This document shows positions 14,521 through 60,257 of a stretch of DNA of 64,000 bases, piece by piece. A model generated the notes under the pieces. It ran no database searches. It had not been told where the DNA came from and worked only from the letters and a program-made list of their open reading frames with translations. Numbering within the stretch: position 1 is the first letter of the stretch; the number at the start of each line of letters is the position of its first letter. Source of the stretch: Octopus sinensis (taxonomy: Eukaryota); contig NC_043005.1 in NCBI RefSeq assembly GCF_006345805.1, positions 65,038,001-65,102,000 on the forward strand, written 5' to 3'. Both the position numbers and the translations under genes were made by a program.

Positions 14521-14748
14521 TCATTGTACATTTTTTTCTTTCAGATCTATACATAACGTTTCTTCAGCATCCCATTGCGGGGAAACGCTATCTTGATCGC
14601 CTGGACTCACTCTGGCCATTCGCAGGGAGACGAGATGATAGTCTTCGTGAGAAGACTTCTGAAGACTCGGAGATCCGTGGGTACATTTTGTAGTTACACT
14701 TCTTGTTTCCATATGGTCTCGAACTTTCTTTGCTAGAGCTGCGCGAAC
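14521..14748 (-). CDS. Terminal coding exon (helix 8 and C-tail) of a class B1 CRF/DH44-type GPCR
   Basis: Acceptor ccaatttttcag|GTT, phase 0. VRAALAKKVRDHMETRSVTT...KNVQ* continues CFMNSD| exactly as CRHR1 NSE|VRSAIRKR. AATAAA overlaps the TGA. Confidence 0.82.
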   Translation of the reverse strand, partial: VRAALAKKVRDHMETRSVTTKCTHGSPSLQKSSHEDYHLVSLRMARVSPGDQDSVSPQWDAEETLCIDLKEKNVQ

Positions 14749-15039
14749 CTGAAAAATTGGAATATATTACTGATTAAGTTTTGAGAAATAAACATGCATG
14801 TCTGATAATCTGATAAGATGTGTATGGGTGTATAACTGAGTGAGGTTGCAGATTAAAAATAGGTACAAACATTTGTGTTTACGCTTTACTTTGCTTTAGG
14901 CATTACGGTCAAGACTACACTGGAGTATCACTATATAAATTCATTATGTAGCCAAAGGTTATTGAACCTATGTTCAATTCTGTTATGCGCTCCAGCCGAA
15001 ACTATGCTCGGACGCCGTGAGTATTTATCACATTTCCAT

Positions 15040-15790
15040 TGGCTAATCTTTTGCGATTAACTTTTGATAAAGGCGGACGTTTGATATTGCTACCCTCTTT
15101 TGAGTTTCTTTTCGTGATGTAGGTTCATGTGAGACCTCGGATATTAGGAGATCAAATTGTGTCTTGAAAGCATCTACCCAAATATATGTAGATCTCTGAC
15201 ATTTTTTGGGTAAGATATTAAATAGCTGTGGGCGTTTGAATCGTAAGCTATTGCGTGCCCGGTCCTCAAACAAGATGGGATACTTAGAGCCTTGGGAACA
15301 GTACAGTGACCACCAGTTCGGTGGCTGGTACCAACCCATCTAGGATCTTTCATATATATATATATATATATCACTGCATATCTCTCCCCTCATCGCTTCA
15401 GAGAGAAGAGTTGTAACTCTTTCAATCTCTCCTGGTTGCTCAACTGTCTTATTGATGCAATTTTCCTAGTGTAGCACCGCTGAACTGCCTCAAATTCCGC
15501 TATTAATTTGACACTGCCTACAGTTCAGAGCAGTAGTCCAGACAGTTGAGAGCCAATGTCCTCCATAAAACCAGCATAGTGTCCTGGTCTCTTGTTCTGA
15601 AATTTCTCAGAACCCATCAGGCCGTTCAACTGCACATTGCCACCATCTAGGGGATAAGTATATGAAACGAAGCGTCCTTGCTCATATAAATCCCCAGATC
15701 ACGCACTGTGTTTGACCCTGGGATTGCTACTCCTTTTCGGCCCAAATATTTTTGTTGCAGTACGTTAACTGGCTGCTAACATTAGTAAAG
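15040..15790 (-). mobile_element. Older degraded CR1-type LINE 3' fragment related to 3163-4878
   Basis: VRDLGIYMSKDASF, WVLRNFRTRDQDTMLVLWRTL, RPQLFNILPK and HEPTSR match the young copy. Many stops. Confidence 0.85.
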
Positions 15791-15946
15791 GTATTATCTT
15801 TGTATATGCACATACATATGGGTGTGTATGTGTATGTATGTTTGTATATATCATATATATAATATATATATATATATATATATATATATATTATATATAT
15901 ATATATTAATATATATATATATATATATATATATATATATATATAT

Positions 15947-16105
15947 AATATGTTACATTACTCAATTGTCAAGATAAAACTCTTCGGTTATCTGGCCATC
16001 TGAAAAACCAGATGGCCAGATAACCGAAGAGATGGTGTTGTGGATTTCCACTTCGGCATCTGAAACTCAGAGTTTTATCTTGACTATTGAGTAAATGTAA
16101 CATAT
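15947..16105. repeat. Fold-back (inverted duplication) of a PLE pseudo-LTR end
   Basis: Left arm 15947-16002 is the reverse complement of right arm 16009-16105, minus an internal deletion. Inner 23-bp perfect stem ctcttcggttatctggccatctg/cagatggccagataaccgaagag. Confidence 0.9.
16019..16079 (+). ncRNA. Degenerate type I hammerhead ribozyme motif
   Basis: gataa-CCGAAGA-gatg...catc-TGAAAC-tcaga-GT-T-ttatc. Helices I, II and III are recognisable, but core U4>C and H17=U make it probably inactive. Confidence 0.6.
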
Positions 16106-17422
16106 TATTTTATAGATAAATTTCCTCTCTTTACATAATATTGATGTCCCTTTCTTTCTTTTGTTATCTTACCGTTTTTACCAATATATATATATATATA
16201 TATATATATATTATATATATATATATATATACACTGTGAGTAACTTTTAATTTTTGAATATACCATTATAAATAACGTAACTTTTACACGTGTTTCACTT
16301 GAGACTGCTTGTATGTTATGCGGTAAACATTTTACTGATGAATGCATAATAACATTGAAACTCCAGATTTTGAAAAGAAAATAGTAATTCAATCCATTAT
16401 TATTTACCAACATGAGTTGGTTGACTGTCCTAAACATAGAACTGTATATAAACTGCAGAGAATATTGTTTTCATAGCATTTAAAAAAAAGGGCAATTATT
16501 TTATTGGAATAAGAGTCAGGATGTCTAAAGAAAAAGCTAAGGCAATTATGTAACAAGTTATAGACCAACGAATGTTCTAAGTTAACAATGACAGGTGACT
16601 TCGATGGTAGTTCTGTTGAGAGCCATCAGAAACTTAACGAAAAGCAGTCGTATACATCAGCACACCGAACATCCCACTCTCTCCCCCTCGTTTTCTCTCT
16701 CTTTCTTTGTCTTTCTTCTCACTCTTTCTCTCTCAGATACACACATCTAGACGTTTCGTAATCTAATGAAACTGAATGTAATCATATTGATCTGATTCTT
16801 TCATACTATAGTTTATACCAATTAGAGTTTAACTCGCGGTACATTAGAATATACATGGAACTCCAACGACAGCGGAAATTGCATGTGTCAAACATCAAAA
16901 GTTTAGCTATTTAACAAATACTACAATTCTTTAAATTCGTGTATTTATAATGAATTAGAAACCATTTATATTTACTTTTTAATAATTAACATTTATTATT
17001 TTAGTCCATGTCTGCTCAGCCAATCTTTCTCCCATAGACAGGATGTTCCTGAACGGAGATTAGTTCGTACAGAAGAATTCTGTTTATGTTTTCACAGACC
17101 TCGAGAGGAAGCATGATTAAATTGAGAAATTAGAAGTAATTGGTAAACTAATTTCCTTTAGTACTGGATTACGTTGATGACTTTTATTCTGTTATGTACG
17201 TAACCGCTTACACATACAACCACTGCAATAGAATATGCGTACATGCTTAAGCATCCGAACATGTGTCTGCGTTTGTCTGTGTGTAAGTGTTTGTATGAGT
17301 ACATACTTCATCGCATATCATTAATGTTGAAAATTACTAATAAGCACGTCTAAATCAATACCGCTTGATAACATGGTGTGGATAATCTAATATAGCTAAT
17401 GGTTTATGCATACGCATACATA

Positions 17423-17843
17423 CGTAGGAGTGGCTGTGTGGTAAGTAGCTTGGTTATGAACCACATGGTTCCGGGTTCAGTCCCACTGCGTGGCACCTTC
17501 GGCAACTGTCTTCTACTATAGCCTTGGGCCGATCAAAGCCTTGTGACTGGATTTAATAGACGGAAACTGAAAGAAGCCCGTCGTATATATGTATGTATAT
17601 ATATATGTATATATATGTATATATGTGTGTGTATATGTTTGTGTGCCTGTGTTTGTCCCCCCAACATTGCTTGACAACCGATGCTGGTGTGTTTACGTTC
17701 CCGTAACTTAGCGGTTTGGCAAAAGAGACCGATAGAATAAGTACTAGGCTTACGAAGAATAAGTCCTGGGGTTGATCAGCTCGACTAAAGGCGGTGATCC
17801 AGCATGGCCACAGTCAAATGACTGAAACAAGTAAAAGAGTAAA
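17423..17843 (+). mobile_element. SINE family A
   Basis: Full head, body and tail; matches 12845-13250. Confidence 0.92.
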
Positions 17844-18145
17844 TAGTATACACGATTTCCCCCCACCCTGACATATATGCATCATATATGTGCGCGTAAA
17901 TACATACATAAATTTTTACACACACACTCACACACACACACTTACACACTCACACACGCACGGACATGTACACACTCATCAACCCACACACGAACACACA
18001 CACGTACGCACCCACACATGTATGTTATCACATCTATACGCGTGCACAAATTCCTCTATAAAATATAAACCCCCAAACAAGCATAACCCTTGCCAGCATT
18101 AGAAAACCAATGACGGATAATAGCGCAAAATATGCTTGGTATATA

Positions 18146-58842: not shown

Positions 58843-58931
58843 ATGTATGTATGTATATATGTATGTATGTATGTATGTATGTATGTATGTATGTATGTAT
58901 GTATGTATGTATGTATGTATGTATGTAGGTA

Positions 58932-59262
58932 CGTCATTGTTTAGTTTTATTTCAAGATTTCTTGCCAATCGAGAAAGAGCCAGTTTCTAACCTAGATCCC
59001 AGGCTCCTTCATTGGAATTTCAACATCAACAACAGGGTGTTTTTGTATGTATGTATGTATGTATGTATGTATGTATCTATGTATATATGTATGTATCTGA
59101 GCAGATTTGTATGTTTTGTTTTATGTATGTGTTCTTGTGCGTATAGTTGTATATCTAGACATGCTCGCATGTACTTTTAATGATGAACTTCTGAAAAGTT
59201 TTGCATATTTTTACAGTTCCAGTGATGAATTGGATCTGTAATCTTCGAATTAGCTTTCTCCT
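58932..59262 (-). mobile_element. RLE LINE 3' end in (TACA)n, copy 4
   Basis: Shorter 5' truncation point ([21 protein letters not shown]). 5' junction into (TACA)n at 59263. Confidence 0.9.
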
Positions 59263-59384
59263 ATGTATGTATGTATGTATGTATGTATGTATGTATGTAT
59301 GTATGTATGTATGTATGTATGTGTGTATGCATGTACGTATGCATGTTTGTATGTACGTACGTATGTTTGTGTATATGTATGTAA

Positions 59385-59722
59385 AGGGTAAAGAGCAAAA
59401 GGTCAAGACCCCCCCTCGGTCATGAATGACCATAGTTTTGCACCTAGAAAGTTCGCCTCCGAGGCACAAGTCCGAGTAAGGTTATTTATTAAAGACCAGC
59501 ATACCAGCCTCCCCTCTGTACACCACCGATGTTATCCAATGGAAAGGCAAAGGCCGATACAGCTTGGCATCAGTGACACCGCGACTCATTTCTACAGCTG
59601 ACTAAACTGGAGTAACGTGAAATAAAGTTTCTTGCTCAAGAGCCCAACAGAGCCCGGTCTGGAAATCGAACTCACAACCTCATGATTGTGAACCCGACAA
59701 CCTAACCACTGAGCCATACGTC
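59385..59722 (-). mobile_element. SINE family B (tail type 3)
   Basis: Head tggctcagtggttagg..gagttcgatttcc, core ctcttgagcaagaaactttatttcacg, distinct tail. Confidence 0.8.
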
Positions 59723-59769
59723 TACCTATGTATATATGTATGTCTGTATGTATGTATGACCGCGTATGT

Positions 59770-59965
59770 ACCGTTGGCGATTTTTTTCCATCTGTCTTCC
59801 CTTCTCTGGATCTTTCCTTCTCCTATGTTTCCGACGAAGAGCTCCGCTCAAAACGTTAAATCCTCCTTCTTCCCTTCCTTCCCGAGCGTCCAATAATACT
59901 ATATTTGTTCCACGTCCTCACGTTGTTGTGTTTTCTCTTTGTGTTTTCATGTTTGGATTAACTGT
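59770..59965 (+). mobile_element. Short TATG-flanked repeat with a degenerate HHR-like motif (59827-59860), probable PLE pseudo-LTR
   Basis: ttt-CCGACGA-a-gagc-tcc-gctc-AAAAC-GT-T-aaa. Several core deviations. Confidence 0.45.
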
Positions 59966-60121
59966 ATGTATGTATGTTGTATGTATGTATGTATGTATGT
60001 ATGTATGTATGTATGTATGTATGTATGTATGTAGAAAGAGGGAGATAGAGAGATAGTTTTTAGAAAACAGATAAACTGACGGGTTACAAAGTGAGGCATT
60101 AAAATACAAATTTCCACTCAC

Positions 60122-60257
60122 CTGGGTTGCTTGCAGGAAAGCAATGATATAGCTGAACACTTCTTTTGAAGTCGGTGTGGACCCCGGGTTTACAATAAAG
60201 AGGAGGTAGTTTATACCAAGCAAAGGAATTAAAATTCCAGACGCCCTGAAAGCTTTC
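60122..60257 (-). CDS. TM6-ECL3-TM7a exon of a class B1 CRF/DH44-type GPCR
   Basis: tttctttttctttgattttgaag|G-KAFRASGILIPLLGINYLLFIVNPGSTPTSKEVFSYIIAFLQATQ|gtgagt, 136 nt. PLLG motif; parallels CRHR1 [24 protein letters not shown]...SFQ. Confidence 0.95.

Follow-up and report, generated by a model that had tools for sequence, protein, structure and literature searches.

The closest relatives of solved structure for the gene analysed here are the human corticotropin-releasing factor (CRF) receptors CRF1R and CRF2R (CRHR1, CRHR2; PDB 6p9x, 6pb1, 7try). In mammals, PTHR, CTR and CRH-R1 share a 42-bp exon for transmembrane helix 7 (TM7), whose skipping yields the delta-e14 PTHR, a calcitonin-receptor variant and CRH-R1d (PMC3179322). 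A 2020 survey reported a single CRHR-like gene per mollusc (PMC7200681). We analysed a stretch of 64,000 nucleotides of an Octopus sinensis chromosome (hereafter the window; assembly GCF_006345805.1, contig NC_043005.1, positions 65,038,001 to 65,102,000), which holds on its minus strand the last three exons of a hormone-receptor gene of the CRF/diuretic hormone 44 (DH44) type. They are very probably the 3' end of the CRF/DH44-family class B1 receptor gene annotated as XP_029641147.2.

Comparison with the closest described receptors

The RefSeq protein XP_029641147.2 and the O. vulgaris protein CAI9729213.1 end in the same 134 residues and stop as the window gene, with no coding difference, and represent the gene itself. 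Its closest relatives outside Octopus are the lophotrochozoan CRHR-like/DH44 receptors—Mercenaria CRFR2-like (P0160), Lineus (P0002) and Lingula (P0008)—together with the arthropod DH44 receptors (43% identity, E = 5e-91). The vertebrate CRF receptors are 27–34% identical over the whole protein. From TM6 through extracellular loop 3 (ECL3) and TM7 to helix 8, the octopus peptide and human CRF1R/CRF2R align without gaps and have in common the motifs PLLGI, VNPG and QG..V..YCF.NS(E/D)VR.A. In this alignment, the boundaries of the 42-nt TM7 exon appear to match those of the exon skipped in CRH-R1d. The octopus protein differs from the human receptors in a helix-8 tryptophan replaced by valine, in a glutamate replaced by aspartate in N-x-E-V, and in an unrelated cytoplasmic tail.

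Octopus has at least three CRF-receptor-like genes: P0283 (O. vulgaris, orthologous to P0172 of Argonauta), P0284 (O. sinensis) and the window gene. The further octopod paralogs sit on other chromosomes. The window gene is the most divergent of the three, and P0283 and P0284 are 47–52% identical to bivalve receptors.

Three exons at the 3' end of a long gene

The features of the main isoform are listed below in window positions. The gene lies on the minus strand and is read from right to left.

60257..60122, minus strand: exon A, antepenultimate coding exon, 136 nt; AG acceptor (...TTTGAAG), GTGAGT donor; encodes the end of intracellular loop 3 (ICL3), TM6 with its PLLG motif, ECL3 and the start of TM7: (K)KAFRASGILIPLLGINYLLFIVNPGSTPTSKEVFSYIIAFLQATQ
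57125..60121, minus strand: intron A-B, 2,997 nt; many (TGTA)n/(CA)n microsatellites
57124..57083, minus strand: exon B, TM7 micro-exon GLLLAILYCFMNSD, 42 nt, phase 0-0; TTTCAG acceptor, GTAAGT donor
14749..57082, minus strand: intron B-C, 42,334 nt; last intron in the main isoform
14748..14521, minus strand: exon C, terminal coding exon of the main isoform, 228 nt including TGA; TTTTCAG acceptor

The original prediction had proposed these three exons with canonical borders, matching phases and a spliced peptide, and all of this was reproduced exactly from the sequence. The first base of exon A finishes a split codon, and exons B and C are in phase 0. With slashes at the junctions, the splice product reads KAFRASGILIPLLGINYLLFIVNPG...QATQ/GLLLAILYCFMNSD/VRAALAKKVRDH...KNVQ followed by the stop, 134 residues running from TM6 through TM7 and helix 8 to the tail; the joined exons read KAFRASGILIPLLGINYLLFIVNPGSTPTSKEVFSYIIAFLQATQ/GLLLAILYCFMNSD/VRAALAKKVRDHMETRSV...KEKNVQ, stop. 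Exon C comprises helix 8 (VRAALAKKVRDH) and a cytoplasmic tail of 64 residues, with the TGA stop at 14523..14521, and its peptide has the same sequence as the C-termini of the RefSeq protein (P0159) and of its O. vulgaris counterpart (P0277). An AATAAA (14521..14516) begins within the stop codon. By tblastn, exon A matches human CRF1R at E = 8.6e-11 and exon B at E = 6e-4.

The 42 nt and the 0-0 phase of exon B fit the conserved TM7 exon of class B1 receptors. This ancient exon occurs throughout the family and has been kept in both octopus and human; it backs the identity of the exon, not that of the subfamily.

Upstream of exon A, the minus-strand open frame shuts after one codon. A six-frame reading of 60258–64000 gave no exon for TM5/ICL3 or any other upstream part of a GPCR (G-protein-coupled receptor), and tblastn with human CRF1R and CRF2R over both strands of the whole window gave no exon beyond the three. 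Since the O. sinensis gene extends over 365,239 bp of a 109.7-Mb chromosome (GCA_006345805.1), no upstream exon is expected in that interval: the window holds only the 3' end of a 365-kb gene. The median intron of the O. vulgaris annotation is 2.5 kb (PMC10700109). Although long, the 42-kb intron is not out of place in a gene that spreads 499 codons over 365 kb.

The minus strand has two occurrences of a relaxed helix-8 pattern behind an AG, one at 14748 and one at 19974. The second occurrence (VKSVFLKR) was considered as a rival 3' exon and rejected: it runs 26 codons to a stop, lacks homology and appears in no protein or transcript.

A spliced gene under purifying selection

The window peptide is identical (100%) to the last 134 residues of XP_029641147.2 and ends at the same stop. 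This O. sinensis protein of 499 residues, named 'corticotropin-releasing factor receptor 2-like', was found by a database search with its full-length ortholog P0001 as query. The last 134 residues of CAI9729213.1 are likewise identical to the peptide, and a further ortholog is XP_052826981.1 of O. bimaculoides. A word-indexed database search with the 134-residue peptide matched nothing, which reflects the sensitivity limit of the index; the exhaustive and full-ortholog searches matched the gene.

The exhaustive HMMER search, over 1.84 billion representatives of 50%-identity clusters, gave one match at E = 6e-72. This is P0001, of 499 residues, whose last 134 align end to end with the window peptide. 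Only the cluster of the gene's own orthologs reached E < 1e-30, and outside Octopus nothing among these representatives came closer to the C-terminal part than E = 3e-16. P0001 is encoded on a contig of 2,075 nt (L001) from run SRR3401912, the metatranscriptome of another octopus (PMC11662614). A coding sequence of 1.5 kb on a 2.1-kb contig implies a spliced mRNA. The contig matches the window at the three exons only, and its bases 1597–1725 map onto exon A. It aligns as one ungapped block over both junctions (472 nt, 89.6% nucleotide identity) that runs on for 70 nt into the 3' untranslated region, which thus extends at least to 14451. The joins 60122 to 57124 and 57083 to 14748 are the same in this intron-free contig and in the identical RefSeq model, so that 57083 is joined to 14748 as had been predicted.

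Between the window and the contig, the rates of synonymous (dS) and nonsynonymous (dN) substitution are 0.44 and 0.037, hence a dN/dS of 0.083 over 133 codons, tail included. Such a ratio indicates purifying selection and shows that the gene is not a relic. One might still take the three exons for a pseudogene or for exon relics among transposons: they are tiny islands within 60 kb of repeats, no upstream exon lies within the window, and the ligand of the family is reported missing from cephalopods (PMC6425005). Yet selection is strong at a substantial synonymous distance, every splice site is intact, and full-length orthologs of 499 residues, with both the hormone-receptor (HRM) and 7tm_2 domains, exist in three Octopus species and in one transcript contig. 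We regard a dead remnant as extremely improbable. The gene is real, under selection and already annotated in three Octopus genomes. The prediction of a spliced host gene thus holds, but the description of that gene as hidden is true only of a prokaryote-style track of open reading frames, which shows pieces of it, since eukaryotic annotation pipelines had already found it. Literature searches on the protein accessions or on 'egg-laying hormone receptor' returned no paper.

A class B1 receptor

Judged by its domains and motifs, the window gene is a class B1 (secretin-like) GPCR, as had been proposed. The window peptide matches Pfam 7tm_2 (PF00002) at positions 203–249 of the profile with E = 6.5e-6 and 26 bits, the curated cut-off being 20.6. 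In the PDB search, it aligns with residues 304–387 of human CRF1R without gaps over 84 residues and across both junctions (E = 9.5e-18). The TM6 hinge IPLLGINY and the TM7/helix-8 motif QGLLLAILYCFMNSDV can be read directly, the E of N-x-E-V being replaced by D. Seven residues (P376, L377, G379, Q410, G411, F420 and N422) are invariant in an alignment of 49 sequences. The full-length orthologs P0159 and P0001 carry both HRM (PF02793) and 7tm_2. The HRM is encoded outside the window, and its cysteines (C84, C106, C115, C129, C146 and C161) are kept in the alignment.

Assignment to the CRF/DH44 family

Several comparisons support a receptor of the CRF/DH44 type. In the PDB, the window peptide matches CRF1R far better than the best member of another family (PAC1, E = 5e-11). 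The full ortholog scores highest among human receptors with CRF2R (257 bits) and CRF1R (251), followed by VPAC1 (188), PAC1 (185), the calcitonin receptor (180), the CGRP receptor (174), the secretin receptor (173) and PTH1R (170). The named top matches of the 1.84-billion search are all CRF-receptor-like. In a search of 5.8 billion proteins, ranks 1 to 38 are CRF or diuretic-hormone receptors and the first other name comes at rank 39; the best matches outside octopus are CRF-receptor-like proteins of bivalves, gastropods, annelids, amphioxus and vertebrates, with the arthropod DH44 receptors next. ECL3 is free of gaps only against CRF receptors. None of the three states diagnostic of the outgroups is shared by the octopus protein. 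Y325, at an outgroup-diagnostic column, is the residue typical of the ingroup and forms a Y-D pair with the neighbouring D326. Profile hidden Markov models of the subfamilies agreed with this ranking but separated poorly: on the broad profile, every class B1 receptor reaches a high score.

We placed the octopus sequences in trees with six outgroups: three calcitonin-receptor-like, one PTHR-like and two VIPR1 sequences. The maximum likelihood (ML) placement used an exchange matrix derived from Gonnet 1992, four gamma categories with alpha 0.7, and an ML-optimised backbone of 46 taxa. As expected, the backbone rooted on the outgroups has the deuterostome CRF receptors first and then the arthropod DH44 receptors together with the lophotrochozoan CRF-like receptors. 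The gene falls on the stem of the lophotrochozoan CRF receptors with a weight of 0.78, against 0.18 for the stem of the arthropod DH44 receptors, 0.03 for the protostome backbone and 0.00 for any outgroup branch. Its branch is much longer than those of P0283 and P0284. Placement on the outgroup stem is worse by 12.0 log-likelihood units and placement inside the outgroups by 17.3, and 98.8% of the RELL (resampling of estimated log-likelihoods) replicates put the gene inside the CRF/DH44 family.

Other evidence weighs against this assignment or limits the gene model. Neighbour-joining (NJ) trees, built from Kimura or gamma distances both with distant outgroups and without them, place the octopus clade beside the outgroups in about 70% of the bootstrap replicates and inside the lophotrochozoan CRF receptors in about 25%. 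The profile scores part the octopus protein from the outgroups by only about 70 bits. Only two of the nine residues diagnostic of the ingroup, judged against the six outgroups, are kept (D326 and F399). The ML model and backbone were home-made, and the tree left out PDF receptors and the invertebrate cluster A and B receptors, so that PDF receptors would be excluded only through their absence among the best database matches. The junctions are supported by the RefSeq model and the transcript of an ortholog, not by reads of this species. Finally, 'CRF/DH44-type' describes ancestry rather than a demonstrated ligand, the cephalopod ELH/DH44 ligand (ELH, egg-laying hormone) not having been reported (PMC6425005).

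Could the gene belong to class B1 but to another subfamily (calcitonin/DH31, PDF, PTH or the secretin-like 'cluster B'), be sister to one of them, or form an orphan lineage that resembles CRF receptors? The basal NJ position, the few diagnostic residues and the restricted sampling of the tree all speak for such a reading, as does the profile of lophotrochozoan CRF receptors, on which a fish calcitonin-gene-related-peptide receptor reaches 416 bits against 437 for the octopus protein. It is opposed by the best matches of two whole-database searches, which are all CRF or diuretic-hormone receptors, by the 70-bit margin over every other human family, by the gapless ECL3, by the absence of outgroup-diagnostic states and by the gamma-rate ML placement. 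The branch leading to the octopus clade is long, at about 0.6 substitutions per site, and the basal NJ position of the clade is unstable. Given the likelihood differences and the 1.2% of RELL replicates on the outgroup side, this position is best read as long-branch attraction, and we consider a different subfamily very unlikely. The prediction of a CRF/DH44 receptor rather than one of the calcitonin, PTH or VIP type is therefore supported by the similarity ranking and by an ML tree with PDF receptors unsampled, with NJ unresolved.

A Haliotis asinina RefSeq protein named CRF receptor 2-like (P0227) groups with the calcitonin-receptor-like sequences in every tree that we built. Its automatic name is probably wrong.

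An alternative short tail

As far as ...HLVSLRMAR, the O. vulgaris isoform CAI9729212.1 (P0274) has an identical sequence; from there it continues as RYSIRGDSRGTAVKEYY to a stop. The corresponding features of the window are as follows.

14609..14610, minus strand: internal alternative 5' splice site AGA/GTGAGT, cut between 14611 and 14610, after codon ...MAR
1073..14610, minus strand: alternative last intron, short-tail isoform only, 13,538 nt; contains the reverse-transcriptase open frames 3207–4784 (plus strand) and 9132–9578 (minus strand) of long interspersed nuclear elements (LINEs)
1072..1019, minus strand: alternative terminal coding exon RYSIRGDSRGTAVKEYY with stop, 17 codons plus stop; exact tblastn match to the P0274 tail, E = 7e-8

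The internal donor coincides with the point where CAI9729212.1 diverges, and its use leaves a short exon C of 138 nt (14748..14611, 46 codons). The alternative terminal exon is preceded by TTTTGCAG and followed by an AATAAA at 987..982. In the resulting protein, the last 41 residues of the tail are exchanged for 17 others. Given a donor inside exon C and an exon at 1072..1019, a further intron can follow the 42.3-kb one. The original prediction was thus right about its length and about the main isoform, but the O. vulgaris isoform adds a 13.5-kb intron leading to 1072..1019. The transcription unit can reach nearly to the left end of the window.

We lean slightly towards the short tail being a real minor isoform. 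It is present in the O. vulgaris list and has no counterpart in the retrieved O. sinensis RefSeq protein (one isoform); that it comes from one annotated isoform of one species counts against it. A stronger version would have the major mRNA use the internal donor between 14611 and 14610 and end in 1072..1019, so that the 42.3-kb intron would not be the last one there. The exact tail of CAI9729212.1 is in its favour, as are the consensus GTGAGT donor, the pyrimidine-rich CAG acceptor, the exact 17 codons plus stop, the AATAAA 32 nt past the stop and an annotation that drew on Iso-Seq and RNA-seq (PMC10700109). However, the long tail is found in the O. sinensis RefSeq protein, in O. bimaculoides X1 and X2, in the second O. 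vulgaris isoform and in the only transcript contig read, and it is under purifying selection between species. Moreover, the window species is nearly the annotated species, and the exact exon match is no evidence on the conservation of the alternative exon. We thus find it unlikely that the short tail is the major form, and treat the long tail as the main one.

Intron content and repeats

The window is an ordinary octopus chromosome segment with 37% G+C, rich in microsatellites and with LINE reverse-transcriptase fragments. The 42,334-nt intron contains such fragments and interspersed repeats, as well as a 6.6-kb palindrome and some 40 microsatellite arrays. It follows from the gene model that every element between 14749 and 57082 is transcribed as part of the minus-strand pre-mRNA, as the original prediction had stated. 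The retroelement fragments and the palindrome (14.7–57.1 kb) are thus passengers within an intron of an annotated gene rather than units of their own. The main elements are the following.

54512–56331, plus strand: LINE reverse-transcriptase open frame (RVT_1, E = 5e-17), with zf-RVT at 55192–56334; within the 42.3-kb intron
3207–4784, plus strand: LINE reverse-transcriptase open frame (RVT_1, E = 1e-24), 526 codons, more than any other open frame of the window; lies within the alternative intron, in antisense orientation relative to the receptor
9132–9578, minus strand: LINE reverse-transcriptase open frame (RVT_1, E = 1e-5); in the alternative intron
about 12.8–13.3, 17.4–17.9, 18.1–18.6 and 41.5–41.9 kb: copies of interspersed repeat families
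36480–36846: tandem duplication, 183 nt
25422–32006: palindrome, 6.6 kb; arms at about 25422–28542 and 28883–32006, about 3.1 kb each, with a 340-nt spacer

Pfam and PDB searches of the palindrome-arm and other intronic open frames gave only LINE RVT_1 and zf-RVT, and Rfam and tRNA scans of the window gave no match. Matches of intronic open frames to armadillo repeats were dismissed as spurious, as they lack a significant stretch.

The arms of the palindrome are 99–100% complementary in most blocks and 80–94% in places. Its G+C content is 0.43–0.45, against about 0.35 around it, and it is bounded by (AT)n tracts and a 124-nt direct repeat (25020–25143 and 32483–32606, 90%). By eye, reverse-transcriptase-like motifs can be made out in open frames of the arms, which have no match in Pfam or PDB. 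The palindrome has one of two origins: an unclassified retroelement underwent a recent inverted duplication, or the assembly of long reads produced a foldback artefact. If it is real, about 3 kb of double-stranded RNA would form in the pre-mRNA. If it is a foldback chimera, the length of the intron is inflated and the true intron is about 3.5 kb shorter. The near-perfect complementarity over about 3.1 kb is typical of unsplit hairpin reads, and the O. sinensis assembly, which we take to be based on long reads, would be open to such artefacts. The unique 340-nt spacer and the dips in identity fit a real inverted duplication. We consider the inflated intron rather unlikely, and even a foldback artefact would leave the gene unchanged.

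Some repeats lie close to the exons. One repeat family has copies at 13537–13836, 60241–60540 and 61841–62140, and also at 10855–11024. One copy ends right at the acceptor of exon A, and two copies spaced by 1.6 kb flank an (ATT)n array (62295–62753, about 150 units). Long trinucleotide arrays of the (GAA/AGA)n type lie at 56888–57079 and 48158–48400. The array at 56888–57064 begins some 20 nt past the donor of exon B, and this 42-nt exon is thereby flanked by a pure purine/pyrimidine tract of about 180 nt, which may influence its inclusion.

Expression, ligand and possible role

In the scenario that we propose, the pre-mRNA would be made from right to left across the window, and the spliceosome would cut out the 3.0-kb and 42.3-kb introns, together with the repeats, LINE fragments and palindrome that they carry. 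The joined exons would encode TM6, ECL3, TM7, helix 8 and the cytoplasmic tail. In a second isoform, the donor in the last exon would be used and a further intron of 13.5 kb removed; such a swap of tails may alter the trafficking or desensitisation of the receptor, not the binding of its ligand. By homology, the receptor would bind an amidated peptide of about 40 residues through its N-terminal hormone-receptor domain and signal through Gs and cAMP. On grounds of homology, a role as a peptide-hormone receptor is the best inference.

The identity of the peptide is another matter. The original prediction had linked the gene to ELH and to a plausible neuroendocrine or reproductive role. De Oliveira et al. 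(2019) conclude that, within the DH44 family, ELH proper forms a branch confined to gastropods, and no ELH/DH44 precursor was found in the O. bimaculoides genome, in transcriptomes of the cuttlefish central nervous system or in the Euprymna genome (PMC6425005). An ELH ligand and a role in egg laying are thus not supported for the octopus. Because the precursor is reported missing from cephalopods, the receptor may have been re-tuned to another peptide, or its ligand may have diverged past recognition. Under this scenario, which we consider less likely than not, the gene would be a fast-evolving paralog known to date only from Octopus, with its two tails as a regulatory layer. As it stands, a receptor of the CRF/DH44 type, one of three paralogs and kept by selection, would persist in a lineage that is said to have lost its ligand.

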